Assembly (NCBI GenBank): GCA_047495785.1
Contig: JBLDXI010000066.1
Coordinates: 682,001 to 746,000 of the forward strand
From: Lepidodermella squamata
Taxonomy: Eukaryota; Animalia; Gastrotricha
Reading direction: 5' to 3'
Length of the DNA stretch: 64,000 nucleotides
Made by a program: the position numbers and the translations under genes. The notes under the pieces are model-generated. The model made no database searches and was not told where the DNA came from. It saw nothing but the letters and a program-made list of their open reading frames with translations. Below are positions 1 through 47,413 of this stretch, piece by piece; the stretch's first letter is position 1; each line of letters opens with the position of its first letter.

Positions 1-559
1 CCGAGTAATCTCCAAGTACGCGGTATACCGTGAAATCTAACTGGACGAGTCCGCAACTTATTGAGTAATTAAAAGAGTAATTTGCGAAAAAGGTAAAGTC
101 GTAATGTGTCACCGTGGATTTTTTAATTAATTTAATTTAATTTAATTTTGTAACATGGACAAAAGAGAAAGCTGCGAATAACTTTCTGGCTATAGCTGCG
201 TAATTTTGCTCAATTCGCCCCTGGCAGAGGGCGACTTAGACAGTAATGCCGAAGTTATGAGGTGAATAATAGTTATTGCAAATATTTGCTTATGGAAGTT
301 TTATTAATAATACAACTTTTGCTATGATCATCTTTAATATTACTATTATTATTATTTTACCGTTGGTGCCTGCGAAAAATTAATGCTTATCCGCCCCCAG
401 CACAACCAAGTTGTTTTTCGGCGGAGCGTATGCTCAGTTGTCAATCTAAATATAACTCTTTCCAAAAAACCACAAGAAGCTCCAACGGCCGAATTGTCTT
501 CTAGTCATTCATCCGCATTTCGCTTTATAATCTACCGTGAATTGCAATTTTTTCAAAAG

Positions 560-3320: not shown

Positions 3321-3490
3321 ATTTCGGAGGCGGTGCCGCTTGCAGATAAGTCGGCGGCTGGGCAGTGAGAATTGAGTGATGTGTATGAGAACTTGCTGAA
3401 GAGACAGATTAACGTTGAAGTAATAAAGCGAAACCTCGGAAATGACCACAAAAATCCCTGAATGATGAAAGATGAAAGATTCCACAGTTT

Positions 3491-3648
3491 GCGTCGTTCG
3501 CGTTCGACTTGTACCTTGTACCTTCGCCTACCCTGAGCCGCCGTAAAAACAAACTCTAATTCCGAGTTCTGAGGTGACCAACGACGCTAAATCAAAATCC
3601 TAAATGCAAGGCGCTTCCTGTTTCTTACACTATTAAGCTCTTTTCCAC
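3491..3648 (+). repeat. Dispersed ~160 bp non-coding repeat, copy 1
   Basis: Shares ccctgagccgccgtaaaaacaaactctaattccgagttctgaggtga and gcgcttcctgtttcttac-ctattaagctct with 7973-8136. Confidence 0.85.
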
Positions 3649-4168
3649 GATGCTATAACCACCACGATGCATAGCCCATGATAAGGAGACAATTCGCCAG
3701 TTTTAATGTTGCATTTTATTTTTTTTCATTCGTTTCAGGTTCTGTCTTTTAGAATACGTTTTTGCAAAATTATAAATATTGTGCAAGTGAAAGCGCGCTG
3801 GCGCAGAAGATATAATTCTAGCGTGCAAATAAATAATTGCATCGCTTCAATAAACCAACAAACTTTCTTTTTTAGAGGCCGATTGGTGGTTTATCAAAGT
3901 TGCAGAAGATCAGGAACCTAATCATTCATCCCATTCCTACTACATAAATAAGCTATATGGTTTGCTCCATATCAAGTGCTTAATGCATTCTCAAAGAATT
4001 AGCCGAATGTTACAGAAAGTTTTTCCTGGATCCAAATGTTTGAATCTTTGAGGCCTATTGAGGCTCATTGAAGTATCGGAGGAGAATTTTCGTATTTAAT
4101 GGATTGCCCTTCCCAAAACTTAATGAAGAACGATTCCGGTTCCTGCGACCTCGATCACTGGAAACTTT

Positions 4169-5016
4169 TCACTTGTCCATAACCGGACTGTCGCTGTCCT
4201 GTCGGAACAACACCGCTACGTACACCTCATCTGACAAATTGATCTCCATAGCGATGTCGTAAGGCCGTCCATAGGAGTAGGCCGAGCCATTCGAGTCTGC
4301 CTTCGTATACACGAAGCTCTGCCAGGTACCACGGTACAAATTCTCGAACTTCTGTTTCAAGTAATACGCCACGGCTTGCCCAGATTTCAAACCGAACTGC
4401 TGGAAGGCCTCGTCGAACGCCTGAATAGCTGCTTTTTCGACTTCGTCCGGGAGTAGCTTGTCTTTTGATACAGTCTTCGCTGCTGACGGTAATAATGAGT
4501 ACGACATACCAGCAGAAGTCAAATTTAGAAGCTTTCCCAAATCTAAGCGGGCAATACGAAATCGGTAAAAACTTGTGTTGAAGTCCAGAATCCGGCAAAC
4601 TCACCATCTGAAACTGCAATATCCGAGGAACTTAGCTGGTCCAATTCTGGCAGGAAATTAAAATAAGTATTTTTCATCAAATAAGTTTAAAAGAGGAATC
4701 ATATCGAATTCAAAGGTTACGTATCAAAAAACATTAGGTAACTATTTAATTCTGGTACGCCAGAAAATGAGATCTAAGAGAACGGGTTCGCGAGATTTGG
4801 AGAAGAAGATAAGTAAATAGTTTTCCTCAAACTTTGGTAGTTTCACCGTGTGGGTGTTACAATGTAACAAGTGTGTATCATGCTTATCATGCTATACTGT
4901 ATAAGTATCTCACGATTTTCTATTGCTGGTATTGAGGTTTCGAGGGAAATGGAGACCGCATCTGCAGCGCAGCACATTGTCAATAGAGCAAAACTCAATA
5001 GGGCTGGCCAATGCAT
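4169..5016 (-). CDS. Signal peptide + microexons + dynein light chain (LC8)-like domain; exons 5016-4914, 4646-4605, 4542-4510, 4461-4169; 156 aa
   Basis: MHWPALLSFALLTMCCAADA signal; 42 and 33 nt phase-1 exons; last exon AAIQAFDEAFQQF...VAYYLKQKFENLYRGTWQSFV...VAVLFR parallels LC8 (IAxxIKxxFDxxYxxTWHCIV...AILLFK). Intron 3 (48 nt) is in frame with a weak acceptor, so it may be retained. Confidence 0.7.
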
Positions 5017-5066
5017 TTTGGACATTTTCAAATAATAAAAAACCTAAAATAGAGATAACATTCTAA

Positions 5067-6006
5067 AGGTGGATTCACTAATGTGCGAATTTTCGGATAC
5101 GAATATTTCGCGTACGACCGTCGCACTGTCGGGTGCGAAAATCGCATCGTTGTTCATATACTATCCGACGTTGTCGCGTGTCGTACCGTCGCATCAGCGT
5201 TTCGTACGACAGTCGCACCGAGTGTTCATAAACGCTAGTCAGAGAACAATGTGCGCGTGCGACAAGATTCGACTAGGGCGCGCGCACTCAAACAATGGAT
5301 TTTGTCGCATGGACCTGGCCTGTCGCATCGCACGCGCGATTTTGGTGGAATTTCGCGTGTGCGACACGACAGCTTAGAATCGTCCGACAGCAGGGAAACA
5401 ACGTCCTAGTTCGGTCCACTTCAAGCGCGCAATCGAAGAGTATTAGTGGACTTGTGCGCGAAACTTGGAGGAATAGACAACGCACTATTACTCTAATGCG
5501 CAAAACAGCACATCAAAATTTTTAACAAAACGGTGGCCGCGCGCACTAATGTCAAAAGGCTAATATCGAAAACAATGGCGGCTTTTATACCAAATTAAAA
5601 CTCAAACAATTCTCTATCGAATGACTACGAATTTCTTGCTTAATAAATTTACATAAAAATTTGTTGGCGCCCTCAATAATCCGCGAGGTGGTGCCGTGCT
5701 AAGTGAAAATAGTTAAATTATAAAATGTCGATGAAAATACGCGGAAATAGGGTAACTGATGCCGAAAATAATGATTTTTCTGGTTAAAAGCTTGGTTGGA
5801 CAAGTTTTGTGCAAATTTGGTTTCCTTTCATATAAAAATTAGCCGCGCGCGACACTGTCTCAGCACCCGCGCGTGTCATTGTTTTGTGCGCATACGACTG
5901 TGATATCCCTCGGCTGTCGTCCGCGGATTTGATGCGACAGAGCTGCGACAGTCGCATGCGACGGTACGACACGTGTCGTACCTGTCGCACATTAGTGAAT
6001 ACACCT
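5067..6006. mobile_element. Non-autonomous PIF/Harbinger-like element (940 bp)
   Basis: TIRs AGGTG(G/T)ATTCACTAATGTGCGA; TAA on both sides (5064-5066, 6007-6009); repeated subterminal TGTCGCA/TGCGACA motifs; absent from the paralogous site near 17495. Confidence 0.85.
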
Positions 6007-6009
6007 TAA

Positions 6010-6607
6010 CAAAAATAAGGAATTCTTCCTGGTAAAGGAGCTGTTTCCATAGATTGGTGTCCGCTGATACCGAAGTCGTGAAGAAGAATGTTTTGAGTGT
6101 AAATGATCATCTGGCTGCGATTCAGAATTCATGCACATCACTTCAGCTTAAGCTGTGAGCCGCGCAAAATGAAGCTGCTGCATTGCTTTAAGTAGTAAAC
6201 AGTGAATAATGCAGTTAATAAATTCGACCATGCTGTTTTGCATGAAATTTGATCCACTATGAAATTTTCCCAATCTAACTTGCAAATTAATGAATTTAAA
6301 ATGTGTTTTTGAATTGTAATTTTTTCTGTTTTACAGCCAATTAGTCGATAGATGGTGCCCTTTTCTGCTTCTTTGCTGTTGAATTCATTTCATCATCAAC
6401 CTGACAGGTGAAACAATGGATTAATTGGCCTTGCATCCGCCGACCGTGAAAAATGGTCGTTTCCACTAGAGCGTATCTCATTATCTCCATAGCGAACATA
6501 ACGAACCTATATGGCTCAAAAATATATATGGTTTTTTTGGTATTTTTAAAGAATTCAACAGAATTTGACCGGGCAATTGGAATTTGACTTTTCAGCCAAT
6601 TCACTTT
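6010..6607 (-). promoter_or_regulatory. Upstream region conserved with 17500-18267 (putative shared promoter of the two cassette genes)
   Basis: Colinear similarity, e.g. ttgctttaagtagtaaacagtgaataat and aattggccttgcatc-gccgaccgtg-aaa in both copies. Confidence 0.55.
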
Positions 6608-6915
6608 TCAGTCAGTATATTATCGGAAATATATTTTTCTGTGCTTGTTGGTAGAATACTGCATCCCGATGATGCCTGACTCGGTGTTCGCAGCAGCGAT
6701 CTGGGGGAGAGACACTGGCTTCGAAGCCGACCCCATACTCCGATCATCCCCCAGGACTGCACAGCTACGTGACGAAGTTTTGGTTGGATATCGGAGACCG
6801 TCTCACTAGTCTCACGGAGACCGTCATTTTGGACCTCGATCTTGGCGCCCCATTTTGAGATGTAAAGCAACCCTATCAACAGCGGTATCAGGGAAATCAC
6901 TAACCTTCTCATTGT

Positions 6916-7360
6916 AGCTATTTTTGCTGGTTTTCGGCTAATCTGCCATTCTTCTGCCACGGTTGGCTCTTTCGGAAAATGTTTGAAAATTGTAGAAAAA
7001 TTAGTTTATCCATATTGAGAATTTTCTCCATCCAACGATATAAAATTTGTGTGGTAATTAATTAATTTTGATTTTCCGATATTTTTTGGCTTGAATAACG
7101 ATTTCTTTTTCATGCAACTTGGACTTTGGATTCTCTCGCCGCGTTGCTTTTTTCAGAGTTGTTCGCAGCGAAAAATCGTTATTCAGGCCAAAAATATCGG
7201 AAAATCAAAATTAATTAATTACCACACAAATTTTATATCGCTGGATGGAGAAAATTCTCAATATGGATAAACTAATTTTTCTACAATTTTCAAACATTTT
7301 CCGAAAGAGCCAACCGTGGCAGAAGAATGGCAGATTCGCCGAAAACCAGCAAAAATAGCT
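6916..7360. repeat. Foldback / long inverted repeat (~190 bp arms, ~65 bp spacer)
   Basis: 6916-~7105 is the near-perfect reverse complement of ~7172-7360. Confidence 0.9.
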
Positions 7361-7972
7361 GTTTTCACTAAATTCTAGAAAAATAACTATGCGAGCCTAC
7401 AAGATGTACCTGGGCTCATTCGATAGACCCTGAAATCAAGTATTTATCTACCGAAACTTAAAAAACTAGAAAAGGGACTATTCGGTCGGTCGATTTTTGA
7501 AATTAATTAAAATTATAATGGGTGGATAGGGCGTTGAGTGGCATAAAAAGTGGTCGCGTGCCGCACTCTTTGCAATAACAGCTCGAATAAATTCACTATA
7601 GGAAGATCGTTTGCGTCCTATCTGTTACAGTGTTGTCTATGCTTGATAGCTTCCTGATTATACCGGCGTTTGGAACAACTGTTTTTGGCGTCCAAGGAAT
7701 CAGTGCGGACAAGATCTGCATCGCCGAGCCCCGACCCGATCCCTTCAAAATGCTAAGAGGGCATATTAGTTTACAGTAGCTTTGCATTAAGCCGGACATA
7801 TTGGCCTTACAATGCGACGATTGATAGGTAGCAACGTCATAATGATTTATCGTTATTGTGTTTTCATAAATGATGATGGAATGATACGACAAATTATTTT
7901 AAATAATATGCTGTGTTGAATTACAGTAGAAGCGCTTGTCTGCTTTTCTCTTCTTATCGCAATGATGGAAAC

Positions 7973-8136
7973 GCGTCGTTTGCGTTTGACTTGTCAACCT
8001 TCGCCCACCCTGAGCCGCCGTAAAAACAAACTCTAATTCCGAGTTCTGAGGTGATCAACGGCGCTATGCGCTATATCAAAATCCTAAACGGCGCAACAGC
8101 GCTTCCTGTTTCTTACTCTATTAAGCTCTTCTCCAC
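7973..8136 (+). repeat. Dispersed ~160 bp non-coding repeat, copy 2
   Basis: Direct repeat of 3491-3648; ~140 bp upstream of the nuclear receptor ATG. Confidence 0.85.
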
Positions 8137-8277
8137 CCTTCAAAATCGAATTCAATAAGCACTGAACTTAGTGACACCTTATACTTGCGGCTAATATTTA
8201 ACTTGCATTTGACTCATTTTATCACTGTATCATCTATCATCTAACACATATCACTCCGCTGTCCTAATATTTCAAAG

Positions 8278-9592
8278 ATGATATCCCTGCCCTCTCCGAA
8301 ATGTAAGGTTTGCAACTGCCCCGTTGTGCCACGGGCTTGCTATCAACCGAGAACTTGTACTGCTTGTCAGAAATTTTTCCGCCGCAACTGTGAGAACTGG
8401 CAGCGATTGAGGTGCACCCATAATTGCGATGATTCACCCATTTTGAAGGAGAGAAAACCTCGGAATTGGTACAAATTCGGTTGTCCGAAATGTCGATTCG
8501 AAGCATGTGTTCGCGCAGGTCTTAAAAGTAAGTTCGTATAAAATATAAAAAGGCCATTTGTTGAATATTCCATTAAATAATTTAGGCAAGTACTATATGG
8601 CGTCTGAAACAGAGAAAAATCCTTCGGATTCGCCCTCCAAAGAACGAAGCAGCCAGTGTACTCCGATACAAAACCCGACGGTTTACAATGGCGAGGACGT
8701 CGAGAACATCATACGGCTGGCAATAACGGCACTAACTTATCTTCACCAGCTTGAATTCGTGAGCCTCTCGATTTTCTTCTTCATTCGAGGATGAAATTGA
8801 CGTTTTTAAGCTTCCTTTGAGGGAACAAATCAGTATTGAAGATGTGCACAATCCTCAAATTTTCTCGCAAATCTTGGTGCGGAGCATCAGTGAAGTATTG
8901 TGCATAGGCCTTGAATTCTCAACATTCTTGAAAGGTTTGCTAACCCTGGCGCTCAATATTACGTGCAATTGAAACGAGATGCGTTAGATTCATTTTCAGA
9001 TACCTGAAAATGACGTCCCAGCAATGATGCGTGGTAGCTGGAAGAAAATACATTTGGCTTACTCAGCTCTGCCATCAACTACAGGCAGCATGTTAATAGG
9101 ACCGAACAATCTGGACAATTTTTTGACCTTGGATCCTGAATTGCGGGTTCGTTTGAAAGGAAACAAACTGAATCCTACTATAAAAAAAACCTTTCCCAGT
9201 GTGTTGTTGAGGCCGAAGAAGAGGTTGCGTCTGAAATAAGTAAATGGGGCCCTACGCTGCCGGAAATCGCAGTCTTCAATCTTCGGCTGTTCTTGAAAAG
9301 TAAGACCGGAAATTCTCTAGAAAATTCACTTCTGATCAAAAATGGGGTTCTCTTAACAGATGCGATGGCATGCAGTTATCATTCTCGCCGTCTCAAGCAG
9401 CGAGTGGATACAGCATTCTCAATGGTTTGCTCAACGCGATTCAGGGAGAATCCTGGTAAAGCTCTCGTGCAGGTGGGTGCGGTCGAGCGACTGCTCGCCG
9501 TAGAAGCAGACCTAATGAACCGGGGTGCAGCGGCCGTTTCGGCAAGGCGTCGGTTGGATGACCAGTCCTCCGACTATTTTCACCGGTTTTGA
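8278..9592 (+). CDS. Divergent nuclear hormone receptor (C4 zinc-finger DBD + degenerate LBD), multi-exon
   Basis: CKVC...CTACQKFFRR...CTHNC...CPKCRFEACVRAGL; exons 8278-8527, 8586-8758, 8811-~8934 join in phase; later exons (ENDVPAMMRGSWKKIHL; TLPEIAVFNLRLFL) resemble LBD helices; 3' junctions not fully resolved. Confidence 0.75.
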
Positions 9593-9684
9593 TAATGGGG
9601 CGGTTATTTCTTTTTCTTATTGCTCCTGAAACAATGACTTGAGATGAAATAGAATGCGAATTATTAAATAATTTTCTATATGGA

Positions 9685-9907
9685 CATCTTAGTCCGGATT
9701 TTGCGGAGTCAAAGTCCAACTACGTGTTGCTCTGATGGTCGATATGATAGCATCAATGGGATCAATGGGGCTTGGCAGCACGCGATTCTATCAATTGATT
9801 AACATAGTGTGAAAAAAATCACACCCACCAACCCGACCAGCCCCACTATCGCGACCGACCCAGCAACAAGTAGTTGGACTTTGACACTGCATATCCAGAC
9901 TAAGATG
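9685..9907. mobile_element. Degenerate MITE-like inverted repeat
   Basis: catcttagtccggattttgcggagtcaaagtccaactac pairs imperfectly with gtagttggactttgacactgcatatccagactaagatg. Confidence 0.6.
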
Positions 9908-10632
9908 GATCTATTCTCACTAAATATTCTTGAGTCTGAAGAATGGTAATCGCACACTGAATTGTTTCAAGAACGAATCTGTGAGGCTATAGGTAATTTA
10001 TTCTCCAATTTTCTGCGACTGGTGATAGGCACACTAGGAAATGATGCATAATCAATTGGAACAGCTGGATGATTGCGCATTCGAAATGCGTGGGATGCAA
10101 AATGATTAGCTTGCGTTGTAGGGTGGTGATCTAGGAGGGGGCGCTAGAACAGAATCGAAGTTCGCCTTTGGTCACTATGCAAACAAGAAGAGTATGAATT
10201 AAATTGTAATAGCATCATTGCGCTGATGTCAAAGGGCAAATAATTTCGAATATTGCCCTTGCGAAATGGGGACGCTCACTACTTCACGCATGAAATATAC
10301 CGCCGCATAAAACATAAACATAAAAATCTTTTATTGTGTCCCCGTTAGCATCTTCAATAACTCAGCAGCAATAAACAACAACAACAAAATAAAGTAGAAG
10401 GAGAAAAATACTAACAAGGCACGGGCCAGCTATGGAGAGCCGCGCTCGTCGACGACGGTGCGCGCAAATACACAGATGGGTGAGCAGAGGAGAGAGGGAG
10501 AGGTAAGGCGGGGTAGTTATCAAAAGCATGGGAGTCAAGGTAGAAGCAGCGGTAAAGTATGAGGGAGAAGGAGGAGGCAACAAACAAAGACGGAGAAATT
10601 GGAAGAAGAAAGGGGGAGAAGGTGAGGTATGG

Positions 10633-13494
10633 CTAACCAAGAAAGGTAGGAAGAGGACCAAGAGGAAGCCGGCTATTCAGCAGTACGAAGGGTGAACGGG
10701 GTGGGGGCTGAGGCGACAGGCGGACGCTCTCGAGGTCCTCGCGCAGAGGCAGGACAAACTGGGCAGCATTGGTAGCATATCGCCGTTGGCACTGCGCAAA
10801 GAAGGCCGCCACACCTGGAACACGGCAGCGGCTTTCCAGCTCGGAGACACTAACGCGATCGTCGCGGCGGACGCTGAGGATCGCCCGAAGACAGTCATTC
10901 TGGAGGACAGAGAGCCGCCGCAGCTGCTGCTTCGACGCGGTGGAGAGGCAGATGTTGCCGAACGACCAGATCGAACGGATCAGCGTGAGGTACAACATCC
11001 GCCGCCAATGACGAGAAAGACCAGGGGCGTGCAGGGCACGCCGGAAAAAACCCATGTTCTCGTGGCAGCGAGAGACTACGTGATCGATATGAGCTTTCCA
11101 GGTGAGCTTGGGGTCCAAACGTACGCCGAGCACGCGCATCGAGGAAACTTGCGGAATGCGCGAACCGTTGAGACGGAGATCTAGCGGAGCCTGGCCGAAA
11201 GGCATGGCCTCGCTTTTCGCAGGGTTGAAGTGCTGGCGCCACTTTGACGCCCATGACGAGATACGGATAAGTTCAAGCTGCGTACAGCGTTGCGCCGCGT
11301 TGAAGGACCGCCCTTCGCCCACGACGGTAAGATCGTCGGCGTAAGCCTGAAGCAGGGCACCATCGACACTGGGCGCCGAGAGAAGGTCGGCAGTGTACAG
11401 AATATACAAAAGCGGAGAGAGCGGGGAACCCTGTGGGACACCGCAGTTAACCGTGACCTGTCGACTGAGGGAGCCGGCGACACGGGCCTGGAGGCGGCGA
11501 TCGCGTAAGTAGTCGGCCATCCAGCCAACAAGGTTTCGCGGCAGCGGCAGCAGGGAGAGCTTGTGGATCAGACCCGCATGCCACACAGAATCATATGCGG
11601 CCTGCACGTCGAGCCCAGCGAGGACAGTCTTCCGGCGACGAGACCGACTGTGAAAGACACGGTGAACAATCCTAAGGGGCACGTCGGGGGCTGAACGATG
11701 GGAGCGAAACGCATACTGCTCTTCAGGCAACAGATGACGATCATCGAGGAAAGTCGTCGTCCAGCGGGCGACGACGGCCTCAAGCAGCTTCGCATCAGTG
11801 GGAAGCAGAGAGATGGGGCGCTGAGATGAGACCAAGTCACGGGGCTTTCCGGCCTTAGGGATGGGGACGACGATGGCTTCTTTCCAGGCAGCAGGCACGT
11901 AGCGACTGCCAAGAGACATATTGTACAGGCGGCGAAGATGCGACTGCAGCACAGAACCTCCCCACTGGATGAAAATGTTCTGCACACCGTCCGCCCCCGG
12001 GGCCTTGAAGGGTCGAAGACGACCGACAGCGTCAGCGAGCAGCCGTTGACTGACACTGAATTCTCCAGGGCCAGGCAGACGAATCGTAGCGGAGCAGTGT
12101 AGATTGCTGTCGGCAGTGGAGTCAGCCTCCAACTGATGCCACCAATGGCGTGTGGCAGCGTCAGCAGCGGGATCGGAGTATGGGGACATCGGTCGCACAA
12201 AGTGGTCGAGCAGCGCGTCGGCGAGGGCCGTCGAAGGTGGCAAGAGCCGCCCATCGTCGAGCTTCATGTAGGCGATAGACTGAGGCTGGTGACGTTTGTC
12301 GAGGCGACGCAGGCGAGCATACGCCTCGCGGTAACGGTGCTGAGCAGACAGGGCTTCCACGTAGCGCAGGTTTGAGACATCACGCCGCAGTTGATGAGCA
12401 GCCTTGGCAGCGCGAAATTCAGCGTCAACTACCCGCAGCCGCTCGCGGAGGACAGGATCCACGTGACCGCCAAGTGCTCGTTCGAGGACTCGTTTCTTCT
12501 TCAGACAGAAACGCATCTCCGCAGACATGGCGATTTTCTTTAGCTGGGACTTATCGGCGAGAGGAACGTGTTGGCGACGAGCTTCGACGATTGCGGCGTT
12601 GATGGCGGCGCGATAGACAGCGATGAGACTAGTAGGCTCGCCAACAGCAGGAAGCGGGATTGCGCCAAGCAGACGGCGAAGAGTGCGGAAGTAGCCGAAA
12701 CGATCAGCGCGCGAAACATCAAAGCGAGGCGCCGGATCCGTGAGCTCGAAAAGGCGGGACGGGCCGCCAACCGGCGCCACGTTCAGTGTGATTGACGTGC
12801 AGAAATGGTCACTGGTGAGACGGTCGCCAACAGAGACACCGCCGGCGAGGAGTCGCAGAGCGGAATCATTGAGAATCCAAATGTCGAGCGTCGACAGCGA
12901 GCCAGTTGCAATGTGCAGATGAGTGGGCTTCGGCGACCGGAGCACAGACAGACCAAGGCGGTTAGCGAGTTGTTGCACGGAAAAACCATTGGAAGTCCAT
13001 AGATCACGACCCCACAAAGGCGACTTAGCATTCAGATCGCCACTGAAGAAACACGGCATACCGGCCGCAGTGGCCTCGGTAAACTCGGACTCTAAGAAGC
13101 GAAGGTCCAGGGAGGACGACGGAGGGCAGTAACCAGTGACAAACCGCACCACAGGGCCGTGGGGTGACGGAACGAGATCCAAGCGAAGCCATTCGCTGAG
13201 CTTGCTGCCGGTCAGAGCCAGCCGCCGCTCGGCGACCACGAGAGCGCCCTCCTGAACTAGAATTGCCGAACCACCACGAGCACCACTGAGCAGGAGGTCC
13301 TCTGGATCCTGTTCGCGATCACACCTAAACACTGCATATTTGCTAAAGACAACACTGGAGAGAGAGTAAAGAAAAGTTTCATTGAGAAAAAAAGCAAGAG
13401 GATTATAGGTGTCTAGTTGCAAGTTAAGTTCAAAGTCCTTATCATTGATACCGCGAGGGTTCCACTGGACGACGACGTGGGACGTACTAGCCAT
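10633..13494 (-). CDS. LINE ORF2: apurinic-type endonuclease + reverse transcriptase (953 aa from MASTSHVVVQWN)
   Basis: APE motifs QWNPRG, LNET, GDLNA, LDI, SDH; RT motifs KAPGADG, RPISLL, QYAFR, DVQAAYDSV, GVPQGSPLSPLLY, YADD, LGVRLD; no RNase H seen. Confidence 0.95.
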   Translation of the reverse strand: MASTSHVVVQWNPRGINDKDFELNLQLDTYNPLAFFLNETFLYSLSSVVFSKYAVFRCDREQDPEDLLLSGARGGSAILVQEGALVVAERRLALTGSKLSEWLRLDLVPSPHGPVVRFVTGYCPPSSSLDLRFLESEFTEATAAGMPCFFSGDLNAKSPLWGRDLWTSNGFSVQQLANRLGLSVLRSPKPTHLHIATGSLSTLDIWILNDSALRLLAGGVSVGDRLTSDHFCTSITLNVAPVGGPSRLFELTDPAPRFDVSRADRFGYFRTLRRLLGAIPLPAVGEPTSLIAVYRAAINAAIVEARRQHVPLADKSQLKKIAMSAEMRFCLKKKRVLERALGGHVDPVLRERLRVVDAEFRAAKAAHQLRRDVSNLRYVEALSAQHRYREAYARLRRLDKRHQPQSIAYMKLDDGRLLPPSTALADALLDHFVRPMSPYSDPAADAATRHWWHQLEADSTADSNLHCSATIRLPGPGEFSVSQRLLADAVGRLRPFKAPGADGVQNIFIQWGGSVLQSHLRRLYNMSLGSRYVPAAWKEAIVVPIPKAGKPRDLVSSQRPISLLPTDAKLLEAVVARWTTTFLDDRHLLPEEQYAFRSHRSAPDVPLRIVHRVFHSRSRRRKTVLAGLDVQAAYDSVWHAGLIHKLSLLPLPRNLVGWMADYLRDRRLQARVAGSLSRQVTVNCGVPQGSPLSPLLYILYTADLLSAPSVDGALLQAYADDLTVVGEGRSFNAAQRCTQLELIRISSWASKWRQHFNPAKSEAMPFGQAPLDLRLNGSRIPQVSSMRVLGVRLDPKLTWKAHIDHVVSRCHENMGFFRRALHAPGLSRHWRRMLYLTLIRSIWSFGNICLSTASKQQLRRLSVLQNDCLRAILSVRRDDRVSVSELESRCRVPGVAAFFAQCQRRYATNAAQFVLPLREDLESVRLSPQPPPRSPFVLLNSRLPLGPLPTFLG

Positions 13495-14559
13495 TGGACG
13501 ACGTGGTGGCTGGGGCGAGCGAGCAGAGCTTGACAAAAATGCGGTCGACAGCGTGTTCAACCAAGGAGAGACGATGAACAAACGACTCGTCGAACCGCTG
13601 AAGACGATCCTCCATATACCCGAAGAGTCGAGCACCATCCGGAGACAAAAATTGATGACGCAAAGCAGGGGCAGCAGGCGGGAGCTGGAGCGTGGGAGGC
13701 GTCCCGGGTTGGCGGGTGGGCCGCGGGCCAGCAAATTCGCGAGTATTCAACAGATGCGTCGGTCCACCCTGGAGATGGGGCGGTTTCACGTGGCGTCGTT
13801 GCTCACGCTCAGCAACTTTCACTTCCTTGGCTTCACTGACGGCGCGACGGCGGGCGGTCTCCTTAGCCTGGGCTACGGTAGGAGCTGACGCAGATCATCG
13901 GCGGAGTAAAAGCCTGGCAGGCGATACGAGATAACACTGCGCTTGTCGCGGGCGATATGAGGGGACACGGGCTGCCGAGGATCGGACTCGCCCGGACGGT
14001 GAATACGAAACTCGGACTTGGCGAAAGCATCGGCAGGAAAGCCATCCCTTTTAAGCAAACGGTCAGCGTCAGTCGCAGTCGCACACTTTACACGGAGACC
14101 GCCACTCTTCATGACGTCGACGGCAACGGGCGCAAGCCAATCCGCAACTCGGGCGAGTTCAGGCTCAAGCTGGCGACGATTCATAGTCGTGATGTTATCG
14201 ATGATAACGACGCGGTATTTGTTAGGGCTGGGAGCGGCGCCTGGCGGACCGCCGAAGTCAGGTGCAGCGGTACGCGGGGTCTTGACCTTGCGGGACACTT
14301 GGCGCCAAGGGTCCGTCGAGGCCCCCACAGGTGGTGGTGGTGGTGGCGGGACCGCGCCATCGACAACCATGCCCTCAGGCGGCTGCGCCGGAGGCTGGCC
14401 AGACGGCGGCACAGCGGAGCGAGCCGTACGCGCGGCCCGGATGGTGACGAGGAGCTGCATGACCGCCTCGAGTTCGTCGAGAGCGAGATCGGCAACGTTC
14501 AACTTCTTAGCTCGTTCCTCTTGAGTCATCCCAAACGGCCGCTTCTGTGGCAAGGCCAT
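13487..14559 (-). pseudogene. LINE ORF1 (gag-like), frameshifted near 13880
   Basis: MALPQKRPF... ends at LRQLLP*; a second frame (APTVAQAKETARRR...TTSSNG*) continues to a stop overlapping the ORF2 ATG; no CCHC knuckles present. Confidence 0.65.
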
Positions 14560-14781
14560 TCGTGACGGTTTGTAAGCTGTCTCAGAGCAGTGGCGCAAAG
14601 AGATCAGCAGATATAAATTGTGTCGCTGGTTAGCACAGACGAACACCAACAATTGTAATGTAAAAGCACAACCTCAGAAAATTTAATATTCAATCGCAGA
14701 TATTCGCAATATTCAAAAGTAGCCCTTAGACAGTTTTAGTCAACTAGTTCATTTTACCTTGACATGATGCGATTTGATGTA

Positions 14782-17457
14782 TCAGCATGAAGACTTCTGA
14801 CGAGTTGCACCTCGCGCCATCAGTAGCTTGGCAATGGCATCCTGATCCCAGCAGACAGCGTAGTCCAGTGCTCCTCTGCCAGCCCTACTTAAAACTTGTG
14901 GGTTTGCTCCTTTCTCCAACAACAATCGTACAGCTTCGATAGGCCCATAGCTAGCGGCCGTTGTTAACGCCGTTTCGCCGAAAAAAGTAATAGCGTTGAT
15001 TTTCGCGTTGCGTTGCATCAAATACCGCAAAATGTCGATGTGCCCATATCGAGCCGCCATAATCAATGCTGTCATGCCGTCGGTCTGCTCAGCGTCGATA
15101 TCCGCGTTACGATCGAGCAGAAGTCTCGCCGCTTCAACGTGATTATACGCGGCCGCATAATGTAGCGCCGTATAGCCATAGCGTTCCTCCTTAGCATTGA
15201 CATCAGCACCTCGATCCAAGAACATGCGAGCAACTAGCAGCCGCTGGTTCCGAAGCCGATTAGCACACTGCATCAAGCGGTGAAGCAGCGTCCCCTTTTG
15301 GTTAGAGCCCGCCCCACACGTGTTATAGGTATTGGGGTCACGCCAGTTTGGATCGAATTTGCGGTTTGTCGCAGCGTCAATCTTCGCCACTAAATGTCTC
15401 ACCTCGTCCACATCCAGCGTCTCGCCACAAGCAGTAGACAACCGCTCATAAAGCCAGGGAACCTAAATGGCAGGAACGACAACATATTACAAGCTCAAAG
15501 CTATAATTATACGGTGAAAACCGAGAGAAACGCACGATAGCATTGATATGATGTTTTCTGAATATCAAGTACCCAGGAAGGTTTTTTCACCAGCAGTACA
15601 AATGCACGTAAATTGAGCAGTTAGTATTTCCTGAATTTTCCTAAAATTTCCCGAAATTTCCTTAATTTTCTAAATGTTTTGTAAATTATGCTGAATATGT
15701 TCCTGAAATGTTGATGACATTCAAATTAGCACGTCAAGAACATCCATATCATCTAGTAACATTTCTGAGATTTTCCAAGTTACACGTTACACTGTATATT
15801 TTTGGCTAATCTATTGAGCCTAATTTCGAGCGTGAGCGACATTGTGTAAGCTACAACCAAGTCCTGGCCGGGCGAAAATTCTGAATATTACTGTAAGTAG
15901 CTATATTACAAATATTTTGGCTACAGCAGCATTATTTCCGGCTACCGCCAAGTCCAGTGCTGTAAGGCCTTCTTTTGACCTTGCCTCCCTATTCGCCCCT
16001 TTCTCGAGCAAAAGCAGAACACTGTCGACGTCCCCACGATTGGACGCGGCTAACAGCGCCGTGAAGCCGGTGTCACTCTTGGCCTCGATATCGGCGCTGT
16101 GATCGAGCAGCAGTTTGACTGCATCAGCTTGCTGCTTATCGGCCGCTATAATCAACGCCGTTTCGCCAGCTCTATTCTTAACCTCTGTGTTAGCGTTGCG
16201 GTCGAGCAGCATACTCGCTGCTTCGACGTGCCCATTCTCGGCCGCAAACATCAACGCCGTGTAGCCGTAATATTTCTCCTTTGCATCGACATCAGCGCCA
16301 CGATCTACGAACAGGCGAGCGATTTCCAGCCGCTGCTCCGGAAGCTCGTGGGCACACTCCATCAAGCGGTGAAGCAGCGTGCCGTTGTGTATATAGCCAA
16401 AAATACACGTGTTGTACTTATGACTCCAGTTAGGATCGAAGTGGCCATTTGTTGCTTGGTCGATCTCCGCAACCAATCGCTTCGCTTCGGCCACGTCCAG
16501 CTCGTCTCCTACGGCGTCCGATAGCTTCGCGTAGAGCAAACGAATCTATCCAGGGGGAAAAGTTCAAACAACTAACATTAAGAAAAGCTAAACTGATTAT
16601 TCTTAGCAGTAAGACATGGAATATGCCTTGCCTCTAGCCCTAAGCAGATCTAGTATCTAGTATCAAGTAGACTAGCAGCTGGTTTACCGTTCGGCCGCAG
16701 TCATATCCAGCCCAGTCGGCAGCACACTTACACGAGTTGGGAGCGTAGCAGAAGCCGCCATTCAAGCATTTCTGCTCGCAAACAGCTAAAATAATCAAAA
16801 ACGAATTATTGGAGAACTTTCAGCGCGAACTAAGCACACGTACGCAGTCTGCTATGTATCGCGTCATTAGTCGATCGAAGCTTGGCCAGCTCTTATGTTA
16901 GGGACAAGAAAATCAGCATTTGGGTTTTTTAGAAATAAGACAAATTCACCTCCTTGAGTTAAATTATCTGCGGAGCTTAGCTTTGCCAGCTCTAATTCGT
17001 GATTAGAAAGTCAAAAATTATTGACGCCCAGAAAGTATAGATGAATATAGAATACATACCCTCAGAAATCAAATCAAGAAGCTTTCTCAAATCTAACGAG
17101 CGATAAGGAAATCGGTAAAAATTGGTGTTGAAGTCCAAAAACCGGTAAACTAACCTTCAGGAACTGCATTATTCGTGGAATTTAGCTTTGCCAGTTCTGG
17201 CACAAGAAACGAAATGAGTCATTGGCATAAATAAGAGGAATCATATCGAATCTCTTTATGAAGCATTCAACTATTATTATGTTTACAATTTTGGAACAAC
17301 GCAAGAAGCAATACCTAATATAAGAGAAGAAAATATTAGCGAGTTACAACTCACGATTTTTTATTGCTGGAATTGAGGTTTCGACTGAACCCGAGACTGC
17401 ATCTGCAGCGCAGCAAATTGTCACGAGACTAAATATTAATAGGGCCGGCCAATGCAT
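14782..17457 (-). CDS. Signal peptide + 4 microexons + EGF + two ankyrin-repeat blocks; exons 17457-17355, 17196-17155, 17092-17060, 16991-16950, 16891-16844, 16785-16688, 16545-15910, 15462-14782; 560 aa
   Basis: All junctions GT-AG and phase-compatible (1683 nt); signal MHWPALLIFSLVTICCAADA; EGF CEQKCLNGGFCYAPNSCKCAADWAGYDC; ANK motifs GYTALHYAA, GMTALIMAA, GETALIIAA; neither ANK ORF has its own ATG (ORF track starts at TTG). Confidence 0.8.
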
Positions 17458-18833
17458 TTTCGAATTAAAATAGAAAATTCTAAACGAGAGAGCATTCTTA
17501 CAACAACAGGATATTCTATTCTTAAAAATCTTTCTTGAAAATTAAAAATGCGGACGCTCACAAAAACGAAACTTAACGAAAGCTTAGCCGTTAAAGGGTC
17601 AACCAGTTTAATGAATTATCAGCATTTCTGATGACGGAAAATGTGAGTAAATGTGTAATAGACAAGAATGTTTCCGGAATGATACAATGCGAACCAAAGC
17701 TGTTTCGTTCGATTGGGCCAAAGTTGATGCCAAAAATGTGAATTAAGAATGTTTCGATTGTAAATGATCTTCGGACGGCGATTCAGATATAATGCCCGTC
17801 ACTTCATCACAATCTGAACGCTGCGCAAATGAAGCCGTTGCGTTGCTTTAAGTAGTAAACAGTGAATAATACAGTTAATGAATTCTATCAAACTATTTTA
17901 CATGAAATTTAATCCACCAGGAATATTTTGTTTTTTACCGTGCATATTAATAAATTTACCATTTTTTAAATGTTAAATTATTCTAACCAATGGCTGATAA
18001 CTGGATGGATAATGCCCTTCTATGCTGCTTACATTGATTTCATTTAACCTTTAACCTGATCGTTGAAACAATGAATAAATTGGCCTTGCATCTGCCGACC
18101 GTGGAAAATAGTCGTTTCCGCTAACGATTATTATCTCCAATTACGAAGCGAAAGTTTAAAAATGAAAGCGGTAATATATGCCGTTCTGCGTTCTGTGTTT
18201 TTTTCATAAAATCAAACAGAGTTTGAAATGGGCACTTGAAATGTAAGATTTCAGGAATTTCGACTTTATCTGGGTCTCATGAATAAGACGTGCCGCCCTA
18301 GGGGCGCTTTGTTTGATTTTTGATGGCAATAATATCAGCTTTCTTAAATTCTGCGCCATGTTGCCAGTCCATACTAGCCGCGAAAAACCCTTCTTCCGTT
18401 ACTTCACCCCGTTGCACAAAGAATCAAATCACGCATGAAAATGTTTTAATGGGTGTGAAAATCGCATTAATATAATTAACACGACTAACATCACTCAATA
18501 TTTAGAAAATCGAGGTATCGCGCACTAGCACGATTGCGCAATGTAGGCGTTTGATAAGCGGCTAGACGCGGTAAAAGCGCACTGCACGCGTTAAAAATGG
18601 CTAAAATCCATACCTGCGAGGGCAGCTTAAGCTTGAGCTTGCGTTATTGCCTCTATTTTCGGAGCGCAAAGCTGCTTCATTGTTCATATGTAGGGCAAAA
18701 GTACGTTGTCTCCGCCAAATCGCGCGCGTGGGCAGGTGGCAAGAATCGACGAAGCGACGACTGAAACCGTGAGGCGTACGCACCATAGACTGAAAATTAA
18801 TGCCTGTACTTTCGCACTATATAGTCTTTTGAG

Positions 18834-21181
18834 ATGGAGAGTTTGTTAAGATTCAAGGTTTTCTTCGCATTGATCTCCGCTAGCTTGGAAAGTAAGTGAT
18901 TTACTGCGAGTACGTTCTGAGAATCTATTCTATTAGTATCTGTAGTACTTACCCTTTCAACTTAAAATAGTTGAATTGAATGTGCCAATTGCAATCAATA
19001 TCAGTGCGCGGAGTAACGGGTAACGGGGGGAATGGGCTCTTAGTTCACTTACCGCGTTTAGTTACCCCGCTTAATACGACACCCCGTTGCTCCACTTTGA
19101 CCCTCTCCGCTATTATGGGGGATAGTATTTGAACATCGGAAACCATCGCGTAAGCTGCGCCCAACCATGTTTCAGCGTTAAAACAAGGTGTTTCCTCGTT
19201 GGGGGTCAAGGGGATTAGTGGGTATCCCTTCAAAGTGGCGCAACGGGGTGTCGTATTAAGCGGGATAATACGGTATATCATGGAATGTTAACCTGGTAAA
19301 TTTATCAACGTTGAATATCAGTTAGAAGCTACGCAAGCGCCCAGTACCCATTTTTGTTTTTGTATTTGTTGTTCGTTGCTGTCGCCCTCGCGCACATGGC
19401 TATACTTTCCTTACCACTGATCGTTTGCAATTCGGATGGTAACCGGGCGCAAATTTGCAATCTACCGTTAATTTACGCATTTATTTTACCGAACCGACTC
19501 ATAATTGATGATATTTCGCCGTATTAATTCCAAGCAATAAGTATACAATAGAAATGATTGACAGATTTCCCAGCAACATTTCGCACGCGATTCGTATTGC
19601 GTAGTGCTGTACGTTACCTAATAAAGTGCGCAGTTATCGATGTTAGATGCTTCGATTTCGTCTACTGCACTGATAATTAATAAATAATTCGGACAATTTT
19701 GAATCAATCATTTTAAAAGTGTCGATTCATTTCAAACTTTTCTACGTATTTACCAGTTTGCGTTCCAGTGTGCCAGCAGAGAAATGGCTTTTGTAACAAC
19801 GCAACCAATACATGCACATGTCTGGCTCGATTCACAGGTACGGATTGCTCGCAAGGTTTGTTACTTATCCCTCTCGAAAACGTAATCCTGACTTCGGTAC
19901 CTACAGCCATCGGAATGCCGCTGTTCGATCCAAGAACATATTCGCCCGATTTTTCCTACCTTAACGACGGAAATTATCGTAACCCCTCGCCCCAGGCTTC
20001 AGCATTACGAATTTACTGCTATTTTTTGTAGAAAATAACTGGGAATATGCCAGTACCGCGGTCTACCCCAATGTCGGCCCGAACAGCGAGATAATTCTCG
20101 CCACGAGCCAGCTCAACAACGAAGCGAGACTGTCGAGCAGAAAAGTAAACTGCCTATTAAATATCGGATATTCAACATAATTTCATTTCTTCCAAGCCCT
20201 TTCTGGTTGCTGATTTTTCAATCAACGTGACAATGCATCTCGATGGAGCTGCAGGATCCACGCTCGATATATACTCGATATCTGTTATATCGAATTCTTC
20301 ATTCAACTACTCAGCATCTGGCACTTACAAGCCGATTGATAGCAACAATTTCGCCGGATTTAATTTTAAGTACAACGGCAATTTACAGCGCTTCACCCTG
20401 TTCTCGTCCCCATTACGAACAGTCTTAGGCACCTCGAATTCGGTGAGCTTTGGCAAGGAGCTCACCCGAGGCCGTATCAGCGTTGGCATTGTAGTTAGAC
20501 GTGGGGCGAAACTGTCGGCTGATGTTTGCTCGCCAACCCAGTGCTCGGCAGTTTATAGCGACATCGACTCGCCGGGGTTCTTGCCCATCGATCCTACCAT
20601 GGAACTGCCCATAATTCATGTCTTCGGGGGGAATTACGGCTCTTCGAACCCTATCAGAGTGGTAGACATACGCACGTACCTATTTTGTAAGCAGCTTTCT
20701 GCTCATTCATACAATAGCTTAATCGTGATTCCTATATTCATAGATGATAAGCCCAAATGCGATCCTCCGTGTAAAAATGGGAGATGCTACGGGTTAAACA
20801 TGTGCGCCTGCAAAGCTGGTTGGACTGGAGCTTCGTGCAACAGGCGTGAGTATTGGAGCTTCATAATAATACAAGCATTTAAGGCTCATTTTGATTTTTG
20901 ATTTCATCAGAAATTTGCGGATCTGTGATTTGTCCTACGACAGCTTACTGCACCGCACCGAGCACAAACACCTGCACCTGTTTCGACAAGTGGAGAACCG
21001 GGGCTGATTGTTTAACAGGTTGATTCTTTACCAAGTTAAGGAGATATGAATCATTGCTGATAATCGTTTAACAGCAATCTGCGACTGTACGGTGGCCCGG
21101 CGATGTCTGTATAAGCTGTGCGATTGCCCGGACGGTTCTCAACAGCATGATTGCAATAATCCGACGCTTGGTGAATTCTGA
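18834..21181 (+). CDS. Secreted multi-exon protein with EGF-like domains flanking a central beta-rich domain
   Basis: Signal-like exon MESLLRFKVFFALISASLE|gtaagt; EGF exons CVPVCQQRNGFC...CTCLARFTGTDC, CDPPCKNGRCYGLNMCACKAGWTGASC, CPTTAYC...CTCFDKWRTGADC; last exon ends PTLGEF*. Confidence 0.7.
19062..19269. mobile_element. MITE-like inverted repeat in intron 1 of the EGF gene
   Basis: ccgcttaatacgacaccccgttgc-ccactttga vs tcaaagtgg-gcaacggggtgtcgtattaagcgg. Confidence 0.7.
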
Positions 21182-46122: not shown

Positions 46123-47413
46123 ATGAGGAAATTCTTAGAGTATATCCTTATTGGATTTGCTTTCCTAACTAGCGTAAGGAATGCTTCAAATAACCAAACC
46201 AAGGCTTTAATGGATGAGCTACAGAAAGAGTATATCTACAACTTTTGCCCGGTCGTTCTCTCGAAAAGTGTCCCGAGTGAGACTGTCATTCGCAACAACT
46301 TCACGCAAGCTCTCCGTGTTAAAGCTTCTGCTTACCTGTTCCGTTTTATTGAAATAAGCGACGTAGAGCAGCGATTGTCGCTGTTTCTATACTTCACCTT
46401 CCAATGGCCGTTTCCATGCCCGATTTATGAATGTAGCGAAATCGTCCATGATTCACCACTCTGTCAACTACCGAAAGATCGCGTGGAAAATTTGTACTTC
46501 TTGCTATCACCCGGCGAAATTTGGCACCCGTACCTAGCCCATATGAATGCGCACGAGATGCCGAGACCGTTCGAAAACGCAATCGATGGCGATATAACAT
46601 TCATTTTCCCTTTCTCAGCATCAGGGCCTCAAGCATATATTGGGATGTGCAGGCGGATAGATACATCCTGCCAGTCGTTTTCTTTCAAGAACTTCCCATT
46701 TGATACCCTGGAGTGCGAGATGAAGTTCGAGCCTGAGGAAAGCGTCGAATTTCTGTGGTATGATGTTGCCTTCTACGGCGTGGATCACTCGCTGAGTTCA
46801 AACCTAATAAGTGACACTGATGTTTGGGAACTCGCGTATCCTGACGATCTAGCAAAGACGTTCACTGGCGAGAGTCGAAATATCAGCGAATCCACCGGGG
46901 TTTTCTCTAGGATTGTCCTAACCAGTCGTTTTAGGCGCAAATACAACTACTACGTCGCTAGCATGATGATCCCGTCTTATGCTACATTTGTCCTCCAAAT
47001 CACATGCCTGCTGTTACCACCCAAGTTACCCGATAGGTAAATTTGAACTTCTCACCTTGTTTTTGGCTAAGATTTTACTTACCAGGCCTTCATTCGCTAT
47101 GACAGCTGTTCTAGCTAATTCTGTCCTACTTGCGATGGTTTTTTCAAGCATCCCTCCAACCTCAGAAACAGTCTATTTTGTGAATATGGTGATCATCAAA
47201 TTTATTGTTGGACTTGTAATAACAATGTACACTTTATTGACGGTCCCACTTGCTTGCTGACAGGCCAGTAAGTACAAAATCGTAATTTTTCGGTGGAAAA
47301 TCACTCGCATTCGTTTGGCTGATGCTCTCATCGCCTTGGCTACTGTTGTCATAGGATTTACTGCTGATGTTTACTATTTTTCCAGGCTGAGAAGTGAATT
47401 GAAAAGTGAATAA
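46123..47413 (+). CDS. Divergent Cys-loop (pentameric) ligand-gated ion channel subunit; exons 46123-47036, 47086-47413; in-frame TGA at 47258-47260
   Basis: Signal peptide; IWHP; CQSFSFKNFPFDTLEC; RRKYNYY pre-M1; IPPTSE M2-M3 loop; M4-like RIRLADALIALATVVIGFTADVYYF lies after the TGA. Confidence 0.85.

Follow-up and report, generated by a model that had tools for sequence, protein, structure and literature searches.

A probable chimeric gene joining an EGF-ankyrin leader to an LC8-like domain in the gastrotrich Lepidodermella squamata

Ankyrin repeats and LC8 are folds that are almost always cytosolic, and LC8 typically acts as a cytosolic hub, a dimer that binds TQT-type peptides. In the toxin superfamilies of cone snails, a conserved leader precedes a diversified mature part. 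The same arrangement has been described for the small secreted salivary gland proteins of the Hessian fly (PMC2955719, PMC2990301). Other systems of relevance here are the micro-exon genes of schistosomes (PMC4350168, PMC4671649) and the chimeric new genes that arise by partial duplication or illegitimate recombination, such as Hun in Drosophila (PMC1463047), which have been reviewed together with partial duplicates (PMC3449122).

We analyzed a window of 64,000 nucleotides from L. squamata, in which two genes on the minus strand, gene A (5016-4169) and gene B (17457-14782), lie 12 kb apart and begin alike. According to our preferred reading, which we consider likely, gene A is a young, one-off chimera of two parents, the front of gene B and an LC8-like gene that was already secreted. 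Gene A shares with the described chimeric duplicates two identifiable parents, the fusion of copied 5' regulatory and coding DNA from one gene with the body of a second, and a breakpoint in formerly non-coding sequence that has become coding, the frame being intact. It differs from them in what was recruited at the 5' end, a secretion leader that replaces another signal peptide, and in its parents, each of which is a member of a lineage-specific secreted family. Like the Hessian fly and cone-snail genes, A and B have promoter-proximal DNA, a signal exon and an intron that are conserved as well as or better than the downstream coding sequence. In those systems, however, many members share a leader and their mature parts diverge by rapid substitution, whereas gene A reflects a single mapped recombination.

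The front shared by genes A and B

Exon 1 has a length of 103 nt in both genes (5016-4914 in A and 17457-17355 in B), with 86 of the 103 positions identical (83%). It contains the start codon and a predicted signal peptide, MHWPALLSFALLTMCCAADA... in A and MHWPALLIFSLVTICCAADA... in B, and ends in phase 1; in B the hydrophobic peak is confined to residues 3-25. Microexon 2 is 42 nt long (4646-4605 and 17196-17155; 31/42 identical; LAKLNSTNNAVPE in B, flanked by AG and GT), and the following intron 2 is 62 nt long in both genes (52/62). The 33 nt of microexon 3 in B (17092-17060, LRKLLDLISE) correspond to 4542-4510 in A, where 27 positions are identical. All of these leader junctions are GT..AG, and exons 1-3 are all in phase 1, both microexons being of the 1-1 type. 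The likeness includes about 35-40 nt directly before the ATG and, farther upstream, a second block of about 290 nt (6327-6039 in A and 17984-17698 in B, both on the minus strand), which is 75% identical over 292 nt (E 4e-49). The BLASTN E values of the shared blocks, from 1e-30 to 1e-37, are far past chance. Because the likeness covers introns and upstream DNA, the leader is a copy made at the DNA level. At the protein level, exon 1 of A is nearest to that of B (79%, as compared with 30-61% for the other family members).

Beyond the leader the two genes diverge completely. A continues into a domain recognized by Pfam as Dynein_light, and B into a six-cysteine EGF-like exon and ankyrin repeats. 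Both the shared front and this divergence had been described in the earlier note on this DNA, and both were confirmed. Each product has one N-terminal hydrophobic segment and no membrane span further on. The signal peptides are predicted from this hydrophobic core, from the small residues that precede the presumed cleavage point and from homology to the family members.

Two mobile elements lie close to these genes. A 952-bp non-autonomous element (5061-6012) with 28-nt terminal inverted repeats, 89% complementary, is located 45 nt upstream of the ATG of gene A and has pushed the second upstream block away from the gene. At least 10 full copies of it exist with 93-96% identity, and its DNA depth is 600-1700, as against about 35-40 nearby. 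A non-LTR retrotransposon on the minus strand (10633-14652), with ORF1 at 13873-14652 (259 aa, open) and ORF2 at 10633-13734 (1033 aa, open, with reverse-transcriptase motifs recognized by eye), is located between A and B just behind the stop codon of B, and belongs to neither gene. Both elements are insertions unconnected with the ends of the shared block, and the block is not flanked by terminal repeats, by target-site duplications or by a transposase.

Gene B and the genomic distribution of the leader

Following microexon 3, gene B has two more microexons, one of 42 nt (16991-16950) that repeats microexon 2 and one of 48 nt (16891-16844, LAKLRSTNDAIHSRL) that is kept in the paralogues on contigs C36 and C42; both are of phase 1-1. 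The EGF-like exon (16785-16688, 98 nt, phase 1 to 0) is 61-77% identical to the equivalent exon of the paralogues. Its matches, EGF_PEAR1L at 5e-6 and EGF_2 at 0.0019 (18.9 against a cut-off of 22.1), are all under the Pfam cut-offs; its six cysteines with CxC spacing are kept in the paralogues. Two exons with tandem 33-residue ankyrin repeats follow (Pfam Ank, E 7e-27 and 1e-32), and they are probably spliced in series. The first is an internal cap-ankyrin module (16545-15910, phase 0-0) with the donor ATTT/gtaata, whose position is the same in the C36 paralogue. The second is a terminal module (15462-14782) that ends in the tail ...RGATRQKSSC and a stop codon, and this tail, including the last cysteine, is common to the terminal modules of the paralogues. 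Support for this exon chain comes from the paralogues in which it is conserved rather than from reads. For B, the earlier note's chain stood in its leader exons and is extended here by the microexons of 42 and 48 nt and by the two ankyrin exons.

The structure of gene B recalls that of the schistosome micro-exon genes, in which a signal exon is likewise followed by symmetric microexons of the same phase (33-48 nt in B, multiples of three) that yield a variable extracellular segment, and in which the number of microexons differs among paralogues, as it does in the family of gene B. With 42, 33, 42 and 48 nt, all in phase 1-1, the microexons of B are within the schistosome-type range of symmetric exons of 6-81 nt. 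They encode, however, a short linker (55 of 560 residues) and not most of the coding sequence, and there is no sequence relationship between the two systems.

As part of the two-parent explanation, gene B would be an ordinary member of a lineage-specific secreted family with a signal peptide, (E/Q)LxKLxS microexon repeats, an EGF-like exon and at least one cap-ankyrin module. The numbers of microexons and ankyrin modules differ among the members, and at least 150 cap-ankyrin modules are present in the genome. A comparison of the N-terminal half of the cap with 1.84 billion representative proteins brought up no relative. With a HMMER profile of the cap (88 positions), other proteins were matched over the last 35 or so positions only, which are an ankyrin repeat; two longer matches (P0174 and P0264) proved to be plain ankyrin arrays and were dropped. 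In a word-index search of proteins, the terminal ankyrin exon matched generic ankyrin proteins only, with the repeat part covered and at most 46% identity.

A search of the 121-Mb genome with a profile of the signal exon yielded about 12 copies, and matches to the microexon pattern were confined to the signal-exon loci. All inspected copies of the leader except that of gene A, including loci L013-L021, precede EGF and cap-ankyrin modules; one conserved architecture is thus found in about 11 genes and an unrelated domain in one, gene A. One native payload family with one exception corresponds to the outcome for which the earlier note reserved the term one-off chimera. The earlier note had proposed a mobile cassette of promoter, signal peptide and helical leader that repeatedly captures diverse domains and so builds a repertoire of secreted effectors or toxins that vary at their C-termini. 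It is true that one leader precedes two different C-terminal domains, and that microexon and ankyrin-module counts vary inside the EGF-ankyrin family. However, the signal-exon profile and the microexon pattern occur solely at EGF-ankyrin loci and in gene A, the profile and pattern searches brought up no payload behind the leader beyond the EGF-ankyrin modules and the LC8-like domain, and the shared block has none of the marks of a mobile element described above. We therefore consider the cassette very unlikely.

The junction and the LC8-like domain of gene A

In place of a separate microexon 3, gene A has a long last exon (4542-4169), which comprises the former microexon 3 (33 nt), 27 nt of exonized intron and junction, the LC8-fold domain and a stop codon, in an open frame of 123 aa. 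A third intron had been proposed here (4509-4483). It would have a length of 27 nt, which is below the size of metazoan introns; it is a multiple of three, free of stop codons, and partly aligns with the coding sequence of the LC8-like paralogue on contig C34. An in-frame acceptor preceded by a pyrimidine tract was not found further down in gene A. For these reasons, exon 3 most likely continues unspliced to the stop at 4169, and of the exon chain proposed earlier for A the leader exons are retained and the third intron is not. The strong donor GGTATGT persists inside the reading frame. The predicted product, from a message that would lack introns of 267 and 62 nt, has 172 aa. Gene A has kept its start codon and its four splice sites, and the 178 nt of leader exons align with those of B with no indels.

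The two homologies meet at 4504-4485: that to gene B extends down to 4504, and that to the C34 gene starts at 4485. The join is not one of exon to exon, as the earlier suggestion of phase-1 exon shuffling implied; the breakpoint falls some 5-25 nt into the former intron 3, the remnant of which is read as coding sequence. From 4485 to 63 nt beyond the stop codon, A and the C34 gene are 86.6% identical over 380 nt, and identity is 79.5% over another 249 nt of the 3' flank, in a gapped homology (4168-3664) that includes a common AATAAA. The whole is a copy of about 0.8 kb whose relative, the intronless C34 gene, is the closest LC8-like paralogue (81% at the amino acid level).

The fold of this domain is that of LC8. 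The match to Dynein_light (PF01221) has 31 bits against a cut-off of 29.1 (E 3.3e-7), with only positions 5-58 of the 86 in the profile aligned. The AlphaFold model has a mean pLDDT of 79 and the element order E-H-H-E-E-E. The 50 PDB structures that match it best consist exclusively of LC8-type dynein light chains and DLC-like domains (best probability 1.00), and the first among them have a TM of about 0.8 (target-normalized) and an rmsd of 2.2-2.7 Å, about 2.3 Å for the best. The domain retains the Trp that is conserved in the (T)W motif. On the other hand, the domain is only 14-20% identical to solved LC8-type chains, Gln replaces the His after the Trp, and the protein has a predicted signal peptide and N-glycosylation sequons (residues 55, 133 and 150 of the gene A product). 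The signal peptide argues for a cellular place other than the cytosol of LC8. When the LC8-like exon was used in the word-index search, it had zero matches, a blank of little weight because the collection seems to lack this genome and its relatives. Likewise, a 903-aa exon of an RNA polymerase I subunit from this genome has an 82% relative in metagenome assemblies only; its best named matches, at 44-48% identity, are scattered among echinoderms, annelids, molluscs, cnidarians and lancelet, as expected of an animal that lacks close annotated relatives.

The LC8-like paralogues on contigs C34, C38 and C7 each consist of one exon and encode a predicted N-terminal signal peptide of their own, and the canonical LC8 is a separate gene on contig C13. 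Since these paralogues have signal peptides of their own, the LC8-like payload family, as judged from its sequences, was already secreted before the leader was exchanged. The earlier idea that intracellular-type payloads had been recruited into secretion is not borne out by these predicted signal peptides, nor by the ankyrin modules, which are a family of at least 150.

Expression, constraint and origin of gene A

The stretch is present in only two sequencing runs, X1, which is small and probably RNA (0.19 share of words), and X2, which is DNA. A GT..AG joint seen in a neighboring gene indicates that X1 contains RNA. In X1, contigs cover exon 1 (depth 13) and the last exon (on 4157-4396) of gene A at similar depth, and the depth is zero at 4474-4875. 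The two outer exons are thus covered and the introns bare; no exon joint of gene A was present among the X1 reads and contigs, and the microexons are too short for those contigs. We infer that the message is spliced as modelled and the protein secreted. A different reading is that the LC8-like frame starts alone at the ATG at 4507-4505, giving a cytosolic protein and leaving the leader exons as a dead remnant. This ATG is in frame within the 27-nt junction stretch, and the joint to the leader exons was not seen in X1. Exon 1, however, resembles the last exon in X1 depth while the introns have none, the relatives in the LC8-like subfamily are all predicted signal-peptide proteins, and frame and splice sites are kept in the leader exons, which makes an internal start highly improbable.

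An X2 contig of 1524 nt (3548-5071) crosses all of gene A and its junction with no differences and at the same single-copy depth as the flanks, which indicates that the join is not an assembly artefact; X2 may be the assembly's own sample, and this support is accordingly not fully independent. That the assembler wrongly joined the two halves is a general risk in repeat-rich gene families, and in view of this contig it is extremely unlikely here.

The dS value was 0.34 for the leader (A against B) and 0.39 for the LC8-like part (A against C34), and this similarity fits one period of origin. Pairwise dN/dS, which averages both lineages and does not describe A alone, was 0.56 for the leader and 0.23 for the LC8-like part, in which all fold-defining segments are kept. 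It is possible, but in our view rather unlikely, that gene A is a non-functional chimeric duplicate with low transcription and no useful protein, now decaying. It is a single copy, its RNA depth is low, the in-frame donor could cause mis-splicing, and a recent transposon interrupts its proximal promoter, so that its expression could be weak or otherwise driven. Against decay, 172 codons have stayed open at a dS of about 0.35-0.39 with start codon and splice sites intact, the LC8-like part combines the low dN/dS and kept segments with a confident model, and both the first and the last exon lie under RNA contigs.

The two-parent origin that we favor would have proceeded as follows. A DNA copy of about 0.93 kb from the front of gene B would have supplied the leader; besides some 0.5 kb from upstream, it would have included the first three exons with introns 1 and 2 and the initial few bases of intron 3. 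The second parent would be the intronless, already secreted LC8-like gene closest to C34, whose 5'-truncated copy of about 0.8 kb would have lost its own signal peptide and about 17 more residues. The two would have been joined just within the former intron 3, about 5-25 nt in, with the frame kept by chance, and translation would now extend through the former donor and some 27 nt. The 172-aa product would then consist of a B-type signal peptide, a short, N-glycosylated, flexible leader and the LC8-fold domain. The LC8-like part, for which either of the C34 and A loci may be the parent, may have moved as DNA or as a retrocopy: it is 5'-truncated and ends about 40 nt past the common AATAAA, and neither a poly(A) tail at the end of the homology nor a target-site duplication was found there.

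On this corrected reading, the proposed mobile cassette would not exist, and the LC8-like domain would already have been an exported module in the animal. The exchange would then have altered where, when or with which partners the domain is exported, and would not be the first secretion of a cytosolic protein. Gene A would be a clean, mapped case of the birth of a new secreted gene, with both parents identified, the breakpoints narrowed down to about 20 nt and what was once an intron donor now coding. A bolder view, which we regard as quite improbable, is that ankyrin and LC8 folds were converted wholesale to extracellular building blocks in this deep-branching animal, that gene A is a rewiring of the secretome caught in the act, and that the leader is a sorting or assembly tag and not a signal only. 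On that view, capture of the EGF-ankyrin promoter, signal peptide and (E/Q)LxxLxS leader would place an LC8-like module under co-expression, co-packaging or co-assembly with the ankyrin proteins. The more surprising biology is that of the background families, the cap-ankyrin modules, at least 150 in number, and the several LC8-like genes with predicted signal peptides, and gene A links both.

Leader and exon structure of genes A and B

Gene A (minus strand, 5016-4169) and gene B (minus strand, 17457-14782) begin with a common leader and continue into an LC8-like domain and into EGF and ankyrin modules, respectively. The bases identical between them were 86 of 103 in exon 1, 31 of 42 in microexon 2, 52 of 62 in intron 2 (62 nt long in both) and 27 of 33 in microexon 3. 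These identities, together with the BLASTN E-values of the shared blocks (1e-30 to 1e-37), indicate that the likeness is real and far beyond chance, and confirm the earlier note's description of a shared signal exon, microexons, 62-nt intron 2 and upstream DNA before divergent bodies. The homology reaches 35-40 nt 5' of each ATG, and a second upstream block of 290 nt (6327-6039 versus 17984-17698) is 75% identical. The two upstream pieces of gene A are separated by a 952-bp non-autonomous DNA element (5061-6012) with 28-nt terminal inverted repeats, 45 nt upstream of the ATG. At least ten full copies with 93-96% identity in the genome show that the element was active recently; its depth in a DNA run was 600-1700, against about 35-40 nearby.

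The exons of gene A lie at 5016-4914 (103 nt), 4646-4605 (42 nt) and from 4542, most simply as far as the stop codon (4169). Gene A retains its start codon and all four splice sites, and the leader exons carry no indel relative to gene B; intron 1 differs by 109 nt. A third intron (4509-4483) had been drawn in gene A. It would be only 27 nt long, versus 52-267 nt for the other introns here, and it is a multiple of three, has no stop and aligns in its 3' part with paralogue coding sequence, so that read-through is likelier. Downstream of 4483, no acceptor was found that is in frame and has a pyrimidine tract. In the simplest reading, exon 3 continues to the stop, giving a predicted product of 172 aa.

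In gene B, the 103-nt exon 1 (17457-17355) is followed by microexons of 42 nt (17196-17155), 33 nt (17092-17060), 42 nt (16991-16950) and 48 nt (16891-16844), an EGF-like exon (16785-16688), and an internal (16545-15910) and a terminal (15462-14782) ankyrin exon, all with GT..AG borders. In the size and symmetry of its exons, though not in its extent, the microexon linker resembles schistosome micro-exon genes (PMC4350168, PMC4671649). The EGF-like module has six cysteines and is conserved among paralogues, with scores under the Pfam cut-offs. Each of the two following modules consists of an 86-residue 'cap' and then ankyrin repeats. In this family, a conserved phase-0 donor closes internal modules and ...RGA...C, with a last cysteine, closes terminal ones; because the ends differ in this way, the two ankyrin exons are probably spliced in series, to give 560 aa without a stop. 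Each of the two predicted proteins has its only hydrophobic segment at the N-terminus and carries several N-x-S/T sequons.

A non-LTR retrotransposon that appears intact (10633-14652, minus strand), with a 259-aa ORF1 and a 1033-aa ORF2 containing endonuclease and reverse transcriptase, lies directly 3' of the gene B stop. On the opposite strand, some 3 kb upstream of gene B, an open frame (20227-20901, plus) has an EGF-like end (CDPPCKNGRCYGLNMCACKAGWTGASC) that matches the EGF exon of gene B in type. At 24500-37000 and 39977-63235, genes encoding extracellular or membrane proteins are densely packed, and most have a single exon. Among them are a fibrinogen-related domain (35924-36871) and a Cys-loop receptor-like N-terminal domain (46123-47040), as well as multi-pass membrane proteins in two tandem families.

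The LC8-like body and its junction with the leader

The last exon of gene A matched Pfam Dynein_light barely above the cut-off (31 versus 29.1 bits). The model from six paralogues showed an LC8 fold (mean pLDDT 79), and its top 50 PDB matches were without exception LC8-type dynein light chains or DLC-like domains, the best with a target-normalised TM of about 0.8 and an rmsd of 2.2-2.7 A. The first 17 residues of the exon, including the junction stretch, had low model confidence, as expected of a flexible linker. The genome search gave LC8-like paralogues on C34 (81% amino acid identity), C38 and C7 (39%); the canonical LC8 is encoded separately, on C13. The earlier note had supposed that a normally cytosolic LC8 domain was recruited to secretion. 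That is not supported, since the C34, C38 and C7 genes, which are single open frames, already have their own, unrelated predicted signal peptides.

Gene A and the C34 gene are 86.6% identical in DNA from 4485 through the stop to 4106, and 79.5% in a second stretch (3895-3664); the homology ends about 40 nt past a shared AATAAA, near the stop of a convergent kinase gene on C34. At its 5' end, the C34 gene has an extra 112 nt, encoding the signal peptide and about 17 residues, where gene A has the B-type leader instead. The homology with gene B passes the microexon 3 donor and extends to 4504, that with C34 starts at 4485, and the approximately 20 nt between resemble both. From this meeting point, the crossover is placed just inside former intron 3, at codon 36-38 of the LC8-like gene. 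The proposed phase-1 exon shuffling was thus not borne out: judged by its sequence, the junction is an illegitimate or microhomology-level joining and not an exon-to-exon shuffle of symmetric exons, and the frame seems to have been kept by chance. Mis-assembly of the two halves of gene A is barely credible, and a 1524-nt contig (3548-5071) from the DNA run X2 covers the whole gene at single-copy depth.

Gene A is therefore best described as a likely chimeric gene of a gene B front and a truncated secreted LC8-like body. About 0.93 kb of DNA from the front of gene B would have been duplicated at a distance of 12 kb and joined to a copy of a secreted LC8-like gene that was truncated at its 5' end, exchanging one predicted signal peptide for another and adding a short predicted glycosylated leader. 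Chimeric genes born of partial duplication are a well-described class (PMC1463047, PMC3449122), and the mechanism proposed for gene A is of the same class.

The leader and the cap-ankyrin family in the genome

The window lies on contig C66 of an animal genome assembly (121 Mb, 151 contigs). RNA polymerase I second-largest subunit was found in a single 904-codon open frame (L022, C25:1666257-1670402); the closest relatives with a name share 44-48% identity, and one at 82% occurs in metagenome assemblies only, which points to an animal lineage that lacks any close annotated relative.

By DNA search, only the leader copies of genes A and B were found. A protein search with the signal exon, followed by a six-exon profile, gave about 12 places genome-wide: C66 (two, genes A and B), C36, C42, C60, C43 (five) and C32 (two). 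Of these, the loci on C36, C42, C60 and C43 were read. Those on C36 and C42 have exactly the plan of gene B, and those on C60 and C43 encode a signal, a long ankyrin array, (E/Q)LxKLxS coiled-coil microexons, an EGF and a short cap-ankyrin module. One of the C43 leader copies is a decayed pseudogene and another is a duplicated signal exon standing astray; both C32 matches lie 2-3 kb upstream of cap-ankyrin matches. A pattern of the acceptor and first 19 nt of the 42/48-nt microexon hit family loci only, the other matches being an unrelated dispersed repeat. This census indicates that the leader is native to one family, with gene A as the sole member with a different body. Of the earlier interpretation, a common leader before unrelated domains stands; a mobile cassette of promoter, signal and leader recruiting varied domains is very improbable, gene A being the one exception among the roughly 12 copies. 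The likeness to Hessian fly salivary proteins (PMC2955719), a secreted family with a conserved leader, is superficial, since many unrelated mature parts were looked for behind this leader and were not found.

Two EGF-ankyrin loci, L013 (C36:812000-821999) and L014 (C42:435000-444999), share 92% identity across 7.2 kb, intergenic DNA included, which makes them either haplotigs that have diverged or copies from a recent segmental duplication. The stray signal exon on C43 (L019:2865-3180) is followed, about 590 nt downstream, by an intact family gene, and in the decayed member (L021:1134-2540) the cap-ankyrin frame is broken; to judge from these two, 5'-end partial duplications are not rare in this family.

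The cap with its first repeat occurs at least 150 times genome-wide (e.g., C4:1.4-2.1 Mb, C64, C73 and C43), and in the window precedes short ankyrin arrays at 14782-16545. Its pattern is LY..L....G..L.V.....LV..ID.AT.G.FDPNW...Y..C....NGTLLHRL..C...QRL.IA.LF.DRGADV. One cap cysteine is invariant and one nearly so; terminal modules add a second, covarying pair and end in a cysteine. Such pairs would be in keeping with folding in the secretory pathway. For the N-terminal half of the cap, no match was obtained in Pfam or among 1.84 billion representative proteins.

Constraint, expression and meaning of the probable chimera

The dS values, 0.34 between the leaders of A and B and 0.39 between the LC8 parts of A and C34, are compatible with one period of origin. 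In pairwise dN/dS, which averages both lineages, the leader gave 0.56 and the LC8 part 0.23; the comparison of L005 with L006 gave 0.24. That gene A is a decaying by-product is unlikely.

A neighbouring plus-strand gene (383-3400) encodes repeated cysteine-rich units (…YTCC… motifs), and its 52-nt GT..AG intron (3064-3115) was confirmed by a 1207-nt contig of the sequencing run X1. This spliced joint indicates that X1 contains RNA. On gene A, X1 contigs were obtained at 4157-4222, 4280-4364 and 4328-4396, and the depth was 13 in the exon-1 bin and zero over 4474-4875. No splice joint inside gene A was recovered in X1, the microexons being too short for contigs to anchor. Expression of the LC8-like domain alone, from the ATG at 4507, is highly improbable.

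For the chimeric gene, the swap would most likely alter the cell type in which the exported LC8-like domain is expressed, or the timing, and also its N-terminal context; the later transposon insertion 45 nt 5' of the ATG may have changed expression again. Gene A would represent a well-resolved origin of a secreted chimera and would connect two unusual extracellular families, and these background families are more interesting than the chimera itself.
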